The notes under the pieces were generated by a model, which saw only the letters and a program-made list of their open reading frames with translations, was not told the origin of the DNA and made no database searches. 64,000 nt of DNA from Octopus sinensis (lineage: Eukaryota). The stretch's first letter is position 1; the number at the start of each line of letters is the position of its first letter. Positions 1,361 through 6,497 of the stretch are shown piece by piece. Made by a program: the position numbers and the translations under genes. The stretch covers positions 26,784,001-26,848,000 of the forward strand of contig NC_043006.1 of NCBI RefSeq assembly GCF_006345805.1, in the 5' to 3' direction.

Positions 1361-3939
1361 GTGGAATTAGTTAAGGAATAGTCTTCAGAAAGGTTTTGTT
1401 ATGAAAAAAGTCATAGTGTTATATTTTTCATCATTTAACAGGGAAATAGATTAATGCTAATAAACTTCCCTAAAGATTCAATAGGAAAAACAAAAAGCTT
1501 TAAAGTCATTAACACTTATAACAATTTTTGATGATTGATATGAAAAGAAAGAGGAAATAATGAAGTTAAGGAAAAATTCAACTTCCTTTCTGAGAACAAA
1601 TACCAATACGGCAGTTAGGTTTTTCCAGTTTGAATGCCAGACATGCAAAACAAGGTTTGTTTATATTTTTCAAATATAATTCTTTCAAAATAGTTTAAAA
1701 CTAATATATGTACCATTTATGGTGTTTTGAGTTAACTTACATTAAACAGTGTCAAAGATCTAAGACTGAATATTAAATTATACTTAACATTTATTCCATT
1801 CATGATGAACACAGTTTCATCAGATTCGGCCATTTACAAGTTTCTTGTACAGAAAGATGCCTTTTCAGTTAGGAACTAAGAAGTAGAGGCGATTTTTTTT
1901 CTCTCAACAAGACAAACTGAGATAAACAGTTATGTGCTTTTCCTAGGAGTACAATACAATGGCAACGGTAACCATGAAGCCAGTAGTCTTACACCTTAAC
2001 CTCACAACCACTAAGAAAAATGTTATATGCAACACAATCTAATATATATATAGTAGTATGAGAGGCTCAATAAGATATCTCATAATTTTTTCTTGTCACA
2101 TAAACTGGTAACAAGCCATTTTAAACCTTATGGTATTTAACTCATGCTGGATCAGTTTATTTAAATGTATAAAAATACTATGGAGATGATTATAACAGTG
2201 AAAGAATAATAAATATTTTGTCAGTTTATAAGGAATGCCAAGTTCAAATGCTCTTATTAACTACCAGAAAAAAAAAATGGTAAAGCTACCAGCATGATTA
2301 TTCAAGATAAAGTGTAAATGTTATGGGAATGATAAAACACACTTTAATGAGGGCAATAATAATAGTTACGGAGATGTGCTTCCATAGCGAGTGACTTGAT
2401 CTGAGATCGTGTGCTGGAACAAAAACAATTGCAGCGTGGAAGGTGTTTATAAGCCATTTAAGAAACGCACAAAACCGTTAGATTCACTTCGACATTTAAA
2501 TTTAATTTGTCAATATATTTTCGTCGCTTTGAGACCGCGACCTGTTCACTGACAAAGCTTCGTACTGCAATGTTTCCTTTCATTACAGGTTACAAATCAA
2601 TGACCAAATACCAAAATATTTTTATAAGTGAACTTCTCTACAGTTCAAACCAGAACTGTCTCTCTGAAGCTTATTGTATTCCTTAAAACACTACATCTAC
2701 AAAGGAATCTTTTTTCCAGATGACCACTACTGCCTCTGACTTTTGGACGATATACATATGTTAAATATGCCACATGCATAAACATTTAAATCTAGAGCTG
2801 TTTCAATTACATAATTTGATTTTATTCTGCCTAGCAACAAACAAAATGAGGACAAATATCTGTCGAATGTAAATAAGGTAAGTTATTACTTCTATATATT
2901 ATTACTTGTTACTTCTATTAAAAATAATAAATAATTCAATTAACATATTTTTTGTACTTTAAAAAAAATTATTTTTTTAATTATTAATTAGAATATTAAT
3001 TTAATTAATAATAAGAAAGTTGAAAATAGGTTATAAAAAATAATAGTAATACATAATTAGTTAGTACAAGAAAAAGAATACAAAAATTAGTTATATATAA
3101 CAGTAAAATCTACCTATAACAACAAATCCACAGTAAAATTTGCTTGAGTTCTTGCCTAAGAATTCACATTTTTTCACAATGAAATTGCCTACCATATATA
3201 CTATTTACTTTGCATAAAACTTTAGCTATATTGGTACTTCTGACTCAGTTTTTATGTATTCTAGTGTGTCAATATTGTAACAAAATGATTCTACCTTTTT
3301 TAATTATAATGTTACGTTGTAAATTGAAGTCAAATGATTTTTAATATTCAAATTTTATCCTTAGTTGCAATATTTTAAGTAAAAACTTTCTTATTCTGTA
3401 CTTTACCAGACGTAATAAGTTGTCCTTAACTTTTCCAAGTTTAATAAGTCGTCCTGCACTTTTCCAGGTTTATAAGTTTAAGAATAGTATTTCTCTTGCT
3501 CATATTTTTCCATGTAATCCATGTTTTTTTCCAGGCTATGCTATTATGCTAATTAATAATATGTCAATTTTTTTCTTCTATATTTAATTTGAGCTTCAGC
3601 ATGTTTTCTTTTCTTCATTTCTTCTTCATCCAATTGATTACCCACTGCCTCATTATTATTATTATTATTATCCATTTTATTAATCCCAGACTCTGGATTC
3701 AATTCTACCCCACCAATAACGAGTAACATCAAAATTAAAGTATGGAAGTGGTATGTATTATAAAAAACTGAGCGCTTGTTTTGTGTTAATATATAATTAT
3801 TATATTGAAACAAATTACAACAAAAAAAAACGTGCAAAAAGTATAATGTGATAATTCATCTTAAAAATATATTCTTAATTAATTAAAATTAATCAAGTAA
3901 CTAATTCTAATATAAAGATTATTTTCAAGATAGAAAAAC

Positions 3940-5273
3940 TTTTTTTTATTTTAAATAAAGAAAAATATATTTATCTTAGCTTCAATGATAAAAGAAATCA
4001 TGAAGATTTTCAGTTTTTGTCTCCTGCAACAAACATTTGTATCAAAAAAGTTGTGAGGTAAAATATCATGAAAAGGCAAAAAATTGGATTCAAGTATAAA
4101 TAACTTTTTTATTTTAAAAACAACCGATATTTTAATTAAGCTTAAATGATAGAGCTCAATTCAAGGAATCTCATGGTATCAATCTCATGCAATGAAGTTC
4201 TAAAAGAAAAAGTTATGAGTGTTTGTTTTTCTAATTTTAGGGTGATAATATAATTCTCCACTTTTTTATTCTAAGGGGACTTTTTATGTATGCAGAAGAA
4301 ATCATACTGTGACCTATATAGTAACAAGCCTAGTTGTGGCACTTCATCGGTTATGACAGCAAAGGTTCCAGTTGATCCAATCAACAGAACAACCTGCTCA
4401 CGAAATTAACCTGCCAGTGGCTGAGCACTCCACAGACACTTGTACCCTTAATGTAGTTCCCAGGGAGATTCAGTGTGACACAGAGTGTGACAAGGCTGGC
4501 CCTTTGAAATACAACAGAAACAGGAAGAAAGAAAGTTGTGGTGAAAGAGTACACTGGGGTTCGCCACCACCCCCTGCTGTTTTCACTCAATAAACACTCA
4601 CAATGCCAGGTCGGGGAATTGAAACCGTGAGTCCACTGCCCTAACCACTGGGCCATTGTGCCCCCGACAACAAGCCTAGTAAGAAGGGAGACAAAAAGTG
4701 AAAAATAGAGCAATTAACAGGCAACTGATTAAAATACGAATGTAGATTGTCAATGAAATTATGAATGTGAAAGATTTATGTGTGTGTAAATTTTATTTTT
4801 TAATTAAAATACGAAAACAATATAAAAATATTTAATATAATGAGACGAAAACTATGAAATTCCTTGCAGTGTCTTTGATAATTTTTTTCGTTACCTCAAT
4901 GATACTGGTGGCATACATAAAAAGTCCCCTTAGAATAAAAAAGTGGAGAATTATATTATCACCCTAAAATTAGAAAAACAAACACTCATAATTTTTTCTT
5001 TTAGAACTTCATTGCATGAGACTGATACCACGAGATTCCTTGAATTGAGCTCTATCATTTAAGCTTAATTAAAATATCGGTTGTTTTTAAAATAAAAAAG
5101 TTATTTATACTTGAATCCAATTTTTTTGCCTTTTCATGATATTTTACCTCACAACTTTTTTGATACAAATGTTTGTTGCAGGAGACAAAAACTGAAAATC
5201 TTCATGATTTCTTTTATCATTGAAGCTAAGATAAATATATTTATTTAAATATATTTATTTAAAATAAAAAAAA
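3940..5273. repeat. Long inverted repeat (arms ~3940-4293 and ~4911-5273) around a ~620-bp spacer; foldback/MITE-like
   Basis: For example ctaaggggactttttatgtatgc (4271-4293) is the reverse complement of 4911-4933. Only a few mismatches were seen over ~340 bp. No TSD identified. Confidence 0.9.
4335..4668 (-). mobile_element. tRNA-derived SINE (second family) with 12-bp TSD
   Basis: Minus-strand A box TGGCCCAGTGG and B-box-like GGTTTCAATTCC. Direct repeat AACAAGCCTAGT at 4323-4334 and 4669-4680. Confidence 0.88.
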
Positions 5274-5768
5274 GATATTTAGATCTAAACTTGACTAGTG
5301 GAATTACTTACTCTCCTATAATGTTGCTACAAATTTTGACATAAACTTTTTTCTACTTGACCAAATCTCAATTTTTTTATGCCAAAATATAGCTAGGGAC
5401 CAGTTCTTTTCAAAAATGTTAAAATTACAGCCTTAAGAATATTATTCAACTACTACCATAGTTGAATGATTAGTTGAACAAAACTGACTGGTAGCAAAAA
5501 ATAAAATGAACATAAGACCCAGGTTTATTAATTGTAATTTACTCCTAAATGTAACTAAGTCTAGTATAAGATCCTATCAGTAATCATAAGCATAATTTGT
5601 TTCTCTCTAAGTGCAAGGTAAATTTTTCTGAAAAGTAAGATATAAACTGTTTTTACTTAGTTTATCAAAAATCTTGGATTAATACAAAACATATTATTAA
5701 ACAAATAAGGATACATCTAATATACCCCTTTTATTTTGTTATATAATTTAAAGAAACATTTAATCTGG

Positions 5769-6340
5769 AATGCCTTTCCTTCCTTGGACACACGAAGACC
5801 TGTTAAGGCAAGCAAAGTCGAAATCGAACCTCATCCAAGGACAGGCACCCATGCCAACCTCCCTTCATTGGACATTAAACTCTGCTTGTGAAGACCTGTT
5901 GGGGCAAGTGAAATCGGAATCAAAATTGAACCAATCCTATGACTTGCACCTGGCAGTTGCCAGGGTCGCTGGACTGACTCCTGTACAGGTGGCAAGTAAA
6001 GAAACACGGTTTCGACCCTGTGCTTGAGGAGATCCATTGTGTCAAGTACACCAACATCAAAAATCAATGGAAACTGCAGTTGTGATCCCTGTGCCGGTGG
6101 CACGTAAAAAGAACCAATCCGATCGTGGCCATTGCCAGCCTCGCCTGGCACCTGTACCGGTGGCATGTAAAAAGCACCCACTACACTCACGGAGTGGTTG
6201 GCATTAAGAAGGGCATCCAGCTGTGGAAACACTACCAGATCAGACTGGAGCCCGGTGCAGCCTTCTGGCTCCCCAGATCTCCGGTCGAACCGTCCAACCC
6301 ATGCTAGCGTGGAGAACGGACGTTAAACGATGTTGATGAT
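5769..6340 (+). mobile_element. RTE LINE 3' UTR fragment with (GAT)n tail
   Basis: Homologous to the 3' ends of the copies at 7445-9172 and 9335-10411 (ccgtccaacccatgctagc...ggacgttaaacgatg). Confidence 0.85.
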
Positions 6341-6497
6341 TATTAAGAAATATAACTATTAACATCGAAAAAATATTGTTCCTACGTACCTAATGTGTGT
6401 AAACATATCATGAAGTATATGATATGCTAAATAGAACCTTACCTGCATACTAAAAAAAAGAAGAATTATTGAATAAGTAATAATTGTTGAAGGATAT

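Follow-up and report, generated by a model that had tools for sequence, protein, structure and literature searches.

A predicted AT-AC U12-type intron in CUL2 of Octopus sinensis at the position of the vertebrate minor intron

U12-type (minor) introns make up less than 0.5% of introns. Roughly one in four has AT-AC termini, the figure for human being 26% (Moyer et al. 2020, PMC7367187 Table 2). CUL2 is a minor-intron gene in both human and mouse according to MIDB (Olthof, Hyatt and Kanadia 2019, PMC6717393, Tables S1 and S2). The human intron is found at chr10:35063063-35071198 and is 8136 nucleotides (nt) long, with donor CTC/GTATCCTTT and branch site AAAACCTTAATA (here and below a slash marks a splice junction); the mouse intron, at chr18:3399987-3405684, is 5698 nt long with donor CTC/GTATCCTTT and branch site AGAACCTTAATA (PMC6717393). 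Minor introns are comparatively frequent in molluscs, according to a survey that includes Octopus sinensis (PMC10639083). Where a mollusc has an orthologue of a human minor intron, this is in most cases a minor intron too (PMC11347168). A per-gene octopus entry for CUL2 was not found in the text of PMC10639083 and PMC11347168, nor was an octopus copy of the CUL2 minor intron found named in the literature searched. The subject here is a 64,000 nt stretch of O. sinensis DNA (contig NC_043006.1, positions 26,784,001 to 26,848,000; termed the window), which contains the beginning of the CUL2 coding sequence on its minus strand. The sequence between the first two coding exons, 6497..1361, is very probably a U12-dependent AT-AC intron located within the Ser40 codon and orthologous to the human and mouse CUL2 minor intron, judging by its signals and position. 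From the vertebrate catalogue and the mollusc surveys, an orthologue of the catalogued minor intron is thus what would be expected at this place.

Coding exons and splice signals of the CUL2 intron

The portion of the gene inside the window consists of CUL2 exons 1-3 (Table 1). The ATG is at 6616..6614 of the minus strand. Exon 1 itself probably starts at 6632, given the pyrimidine-rich tract and the AG (6634-6633) that precede this position. The 3′ end of exon 1, at position 6498, reads ...AATGATCGGTTTTC. With 6498 joined to 1360, Ser40 is read as TCT and the two exons encode a 74-residue peptide, the N-terminus of which reads MSLKPRKVDF...WNDRFSDVYALC. This peptide aligns with human CUL2 residues 1-74 without a gap, 44 of the 74 positions being identical (E about 1e-23), and a PDB search with it gave 13 matches, all 13 of them cullin-2. 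Exons 1-3 together match the Pfam Cullin family PF00888 (45.2 bits vs a cut-off of 33.2), and a tblastn search with the transcript of a relative as query shows matches at each of exons 1, 2 and 3. By these alignments, the N-terminus is collinear with CUL2 rather than with other cullins. Exon 3 (TVRNDSNILSAYHKHWQEYSQGSIYLNQLFG) and the U2-type intron preceding it were not mentioned in the first-pass annotation of this DNA.

The bases directly after exon 1 are ATATCCTTCAAC, a donor of the form [A/G]TATCCTT that characterizes U12-type introns. The 3′ end of the 5137-nt intron reads ...TATTCCTTAAC-TAATTCCAC and its junction with exon 2 reads ...GACTATTCCTTAACTAATTCCAC/TGATGTCTATGCTCTC. The branch-site core TCCTTAAC is at 1377..1370 and the presumed branch A (position 1371) lies 10 nt away from the final base of the intron; the motif has the U12 form (TTCCTTRAY) and is within the range of roughly 10-20 nt from the 3′ splice site. 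The terminal dinucleotides AT...AC are compatible with a U12-type intron, which may be AT-AC or GT-AG. The last 40 nt of the intron are 57% pyrimidine and do not contain a long pyrimidine run, i.e. there is no strong polypyrimidine tract. Donor and branch motifs are both exact consensus matches; MIDB gives scores of more than 90% for entries whose branch sites are almost identical to this one. The AT-AC ends, the perfect branch site about 10 nt from the 3′ end and the exon lengths of 119 and 103 nt, all proposed in the first-pass annotation, are borne out to the base. In its ATATCCTT donor, its TCCTTAAC branch site placed about 10 nt ahead of the AC end, its lack of a pronounced polypyrimidine tract and its non-zero phase, the intron of the window matches AT-AC U12-type introns in general, and no difference from them was detected.

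AT-AC introns that are excised by the major (U2-dependent) spliceosome are not known to display a TATCCTT donor or a TCCTTAAC branch site near the 3′ end. Here donor and branch site are both perfect and the human orthologue is classed as minor. U2-dependent excision of this intron is hardly credible, although a few such introns are described (PMC1557818) and AT-AC introns constitute 0.01% of human U2-type introns (Moyer et al., PMC7367187).

As a minor intron, it would be recognized by the U11/U12 di-small nuclear ribonucleoprotein, with the donor ATATCCTT and the branch site TTCCTTAAC read as one unit. U12 would pair with the branch site, U6atac would take over from U11 at the donor, and excision would join TC/T, which restores the Ser40 codon and the WNDRFS-DVYALC junction. 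Recognition by U11/U12 and the exchange of U11 for U6atac are established steps of minor splicing; that the minor spliceosome acts on this intron in the octopus would be expected from the signals. If the intron were retained, a stop codon would be reached 45 codons later and the read-through open reading frame (ORF) would give a product of 85 amino acids (aa). Full-length CUL2 therefore needs the removal of the AT-AC intron.

Taken alone, each of the two motifs is unremarkable and is at about chance frequency in this AT-rich window: the donor motif ATATCCTT is present in 4 copies vs 4.5 expected, and the branch motif TCCTTAAC in 7 copies vs 2.2 expected. Together with this frequency, the presence of in-frame alternatives (the best being an intron at 6450..1383) and of a U2-like GTAAGG donor at 6442 would favor a different explanation, in which the major spliceosome joins the exons via a GT-AG pair elsewhere and the ATATCCTT and TCCTTAAC motifs are coincidental. 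However the two motifs coincide precisely with the points at which homology breaks off and sets in again. The donor motif begins at the very base where CUL2 homology stops, and 9 nt separate the end of the branch motif from the base at which homology returns. Given the motif densities observed in the window, the joint chance of this placement is estimated at about 1e-8. Moreover, when every open-frame GT-AG, GC-AG and AT-AC pair around both boundaries was enumerated, 6497/1361 was the sole pair that yielded a gapless CUL2 product. No GT-AG or GC-AG pair in this exhaustive scan reproduces the conserved junction, which upholds the earlier statement that only the 6497/1361 boundaries give WNDRFS-DVYALC. 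The top GT-AG pair adds 23 unconserved residues that are found in no CUL2, and U12 signals are present at the same site in many other genomes, vertebrates included. GT-AG splicing with coincidental motifs is thus very improbable.

Some points nevertheless weigh against a U12-dependent AT-AC intron. The 6498/1360 junction is a prediction from the DNA. An Rfam scan of the window was empty and gave no small nuclear RNA. Lastly, there is a strong U2-like donor, CAG/GTAAGG at 6442, 55 nt inside the intron on the minus strand. This donor may act as a decoy or as an alternative site, and could compete with the U12-type site or yield minor isoforms. A contig (L012) whose first CUL2 exon is identical to that of human does not share it.

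The sequence at 6442-6466 of the window (minus strand) displays a T-rich tract ending in AG (6450), followed by TATGCAG/GTAAGG, at 47-55 nt inside the U12 intron. A second U12-type pair on the minus strand, ATATCCTT at 21132 with TCCTTAAC at 11296, was considered and rejected. Neither of its sites is flanked by coding homology, a TAA triplet immediately precedes its ATATCCTT, and the nearest terminus downstream of its branch motif is AG, not AC.

Table 1. Positions of features in the window, and sequences found at the homologous intron sites in contigs from other genomes
Feature	Location	Strand	Details
CUL2 coding exon 1	6498..6616	-	119 nt from ATG; codons 1-39 and 2 nt of Ser40
AT-AC U12-type intron (predicted)	1361..6497	-	5137 nt; phase 2 within Ser40 codon
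U12-type 5′ splice site, AT subtype	6489..6497	-	ATATCCTTC; directly at exon 1 boundary
Branch-site motif	1370..1378	-	TTCCTTAAC; 9 nt between motif and 3′ junction
3′ terminal dinucleotide	1361..1362	-	AC; intron end ...CCAC
CUL2 coding exon 2	1258..1360	-	103 nt; then U2-type donor AAG/GTAAGA
Ordinary U2-type GT-AG intron of CUL2	248..1257	-	1010 nt; GTAAGA...TTAATTTTAG
CUL2 coding exon 3	156..247	-	92 nt; TVRNDSNILSAYHKHWQEYSQGSIYLNQLFG; GTAAGT next
Inverted repeat inside intron	3939..5274		arms 3939-4293 and 4911-5274; 364 nt, 96% identical, about 620 nt apart
Dispersed-repeat copy inside intron	5862..6360		about 140 nt downstream of U12 donor
Reverse transcriptase fragment	13036-13434	-
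Long terminal repeat (LTR)-type reverse transcriptase/RNase H fragment	38790-39338	+
Long interspersed element (LINE) endonuclease and reverse transcriptase fragment	50774-52592	+
mariner Transposase_1 fragment	58994-59413	-
CUL2 site, AT-AC U12-type	L005-L007, three Logan runs		ATATCCTTAT...TTTCCTTAACGTCTGCGTAC/; 223-236 nt
CUL2 site, AT-AC U12-type	L011, JGI metagenome		ATATCCTTTT...GTTTCCTTAACTATATCTAC/; 629 nt
CUL2 site, GT-AG U12-type	L002		GGCCTTAAC, then 9 nt to terminal AG; 491 nt
CUL2 site, GT-AG U12-type	L003		ATTCTTGAC; 256 nt
CUL2 site, GT-AG U12-type	L004		GGACTTAAC; 76 nt
CUL2 site, U2-type intron	L009		GTACGT...TTCTTGTAG; 69 nt
CUL2 site, no intron	L010, 661-kb contig
CUL1 contigs with U12-type intron	L017, L021, L025-L027, L033, L037, L041, L046, L048-L057, L060

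The same site in vertebrates and other genomes

A search with human CUL2 residues 1-74 as query returned many short genomic ORFs that are identical to human through WNDRFS and then continue YP.... In contig L012 the exon encodes human CUL2 residues 1-40 with 100% identity and the donor junction is CGCTTCTC/GTATCCTTTG, in the longer context ...AATGACCGCTTCTC/GTATCCTTTGATG. The donor TTCTC/GTATCCTTTG agrees with that given in MIDB and follows the second base of the Ser40 codon; codon and phase are those of the intron in the window. From the MIDB donor and the codon and phase match of L012, the vertebrate and the octopus CUL2 minor introns therefore share their position. The possible orthology with a vertebrate minor intron that was raised, unverified, in the first-pass annotation is thus confirmed by the human and mouse entries of MIDB and by L012, and the comparison with human CUL2 that it proposed gives the same codon and phase, with U12-type signals in both introns.

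The human and mouse introns resemble that of the octopus in several respects. They too separate coding exons 1 and 2 and interrupt the Ser40 codon behind its second base (WNDRFS/D), in the same phase, they have the U12-type donor TATCCTT, and they are of kilobase scale (8136 nt in human, 5698 nt in mouse and 5137 nt here). They differ in subtype and branch site. The vertebrate intron is GT-AG with a weaker branch site (AAAACCTTAATA, MIDB score 67), whereas the octopus intron is AT-AC with a perfect TTCCTTAAC. The octopus intron represents the AT-AC form of a catalogued, old and conserved minor intron.

Donors of the form [A/G]TATCCTT in L002-L008, L011 and L012 share codon and phase with the donor in the window, and equivalent branch motifs are found 9-10 nt from the junction in L002, L004, L005-L007 and L011. 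Both AT-AC and GT-AG subtypes are represented among these contigs (Table 1). Among the proteins retrieved, WNDRFS is followed by YP (equivalent to [A/G]TATCC) in 73 read-through ORFs of genomic contigs, while another 49 show the spliced form with D[IV]Y. The spliced transcript L001, from a relative whose protein has 72% aa identity to that of the window, joins ...TTTTC/AGATGTC at the homologous point. This pattern is the usual one for an old minor intron, namely long conservation, subtype switching, occasional conversion to U2 type and occasional loss (for background on these processes see PMC10639083).

Two protein records are of note at this site. The Camelus ferus gene model "hypothetical protein CB1_001294002" (P0078) continues past the orthologous U12 donor and into intron sequence (WNDRFSYPSWEA...). 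In a fragment of a human protein in UniProt (P0090), WNDRFS is followed by the unrelated sequence FIIFTLETLGG..., which may reflect an alternative acceptor.

CUL1 and other cullin paralogues

MIDB also lists CUL1, CUL4A and CUL4B as minor-intron genes (PMC6717393). The human CUL1 minor intron is at chr7:148730263-148753975 and has the donor CAC/GTATCCTCT (PMC6717393). Metagenome contigs were scanned with human CUL1 residues 1-61 as query (the sequence having been checked against PDB), which gave 57 loci. At 19 of the 57 the exon ends ...YMELY-T(AC/GTATCCT...), i.e. a GT-AG U12-type intron follows the second base of the Thr47 codon. Where the 3′ end is captured, the branch site is TCCTTAAC, TCCTTGAC or TCTTTAAC, at 9-11 nt from the AG. 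Seven hits of the scan show a U2-like donor, six of these at the same place (five distinct contigs), and 26 are continuous.

A BLASTP alignment places CUL1 ELYT/HVYNYC opposite CUL2 DRFS/DIYALC in a stretch that contains no gap, such that Thr47 corresponds to Ser40 with the same phase. The CUL1 intron is thus similar to that of CUL2 in being U12-type, in the aligned codon (AC/GTATCC vs TC/[A/G]TATCC) and in phase. It differs in that it belongs to a paralogous gene and that GT-AG is the only subtype seen. If the shared site reflects common descent, the minor intron would predate the duplication that gave rise to CUL1 and CUL2, and the alignment inclines us modestly toward this possibility, which is the simplest one; otherwise the two introns would have been inserted in parallel at this site. 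With common descent, the minor intron would have been kept in both paralogues since early eukaryote evolution, with subtype switching, U2 conversion or loss. A common origin of the CUL1 and CUL2 minor introns was not found stated in the literature searched.

The AT-AC intron of CUL4A and CUL4B was also considered as occupying the same site, but its flank does not seem to fit the aligned codon of the CUL4A/B protein sequence. The flank is given in MIDB as AGA/ATATCCTTT (PMC6717393).

Repeats in the window and significance of the intron

The octopus intron, at 5.1 kb, is about ten to seventy times longer than the introns of 76-629 nt found in the other invertebrate-like contigs. The extra length is due in part to the inverted-repeat pair and the dispersed-repeat copy (Table 1), two transposon-like repeats that amount to about a quarter of the 5.1 kb. 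The inverted repeat is probably what remains of a transposon, either one with long inverted repeats at its termini or one of the foldback type. The dispersed repeat has five further copies in the window, at 8576-9188, 10020-10414, 46270-46447, 53808-54338 and 61312-61416, and identity between copies is 73-90%.

An ORF inside the intron, at 3556-3855 on the minus strand, carries the sequence GGVELNPES, a degenerate form of the 2A-like motif D(V/I)ExNPGP. This motif occurs at the start of some non-LTR retrotransposon ORFs. The ORF at 3556-3855 has no Pfam match.

Apart from the CUL2 exons, the window seems to consist of repeat DNA. About 2 kb at 47731-49808 are a microsatellite of the TA/TG type (GC content 0.14), three reading frames of which are open and create spurious ORFs of up to 664 aa. 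Similar but shorter tracts are scattered through the window, and fragments of several transposable element types are listed in Table 1. No second host gene was recognized upstream of CUL2 in the window, and a tRNA scan of the window was empty. The dominance of transposon debris and microsatellites would be in keeping with a decaying copy of CUL2, a pseudogene or an assembly artefact in which the intron is no longer spliced. However the three consecutive exons are intact, in frame and conserved, and all of their splice signals are intact as well, which makes decay or artefact most unlikely.

As a probable minor intron, the 6497..1361 sequence has consequences for annotation. A gene model must allow the AT-AC junction, otherwise the first 40 residues of CUL2 are lost or are extended into the intron. 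The N-terminal region of CUL2 carries the adaptor-binding N-terminus. Mis-annotation at this locus is plausible, given that the camel model makes such an error at the orthologous intron.

The intron is a further example of how long minor introns are conserved and of their switching between subtypes, and it leaves the current understanding of these introns unchanged. As with other minor-intron genes, CUL2 dosage in this animal would be expected to be sensitive to minor-spliceosome activity.

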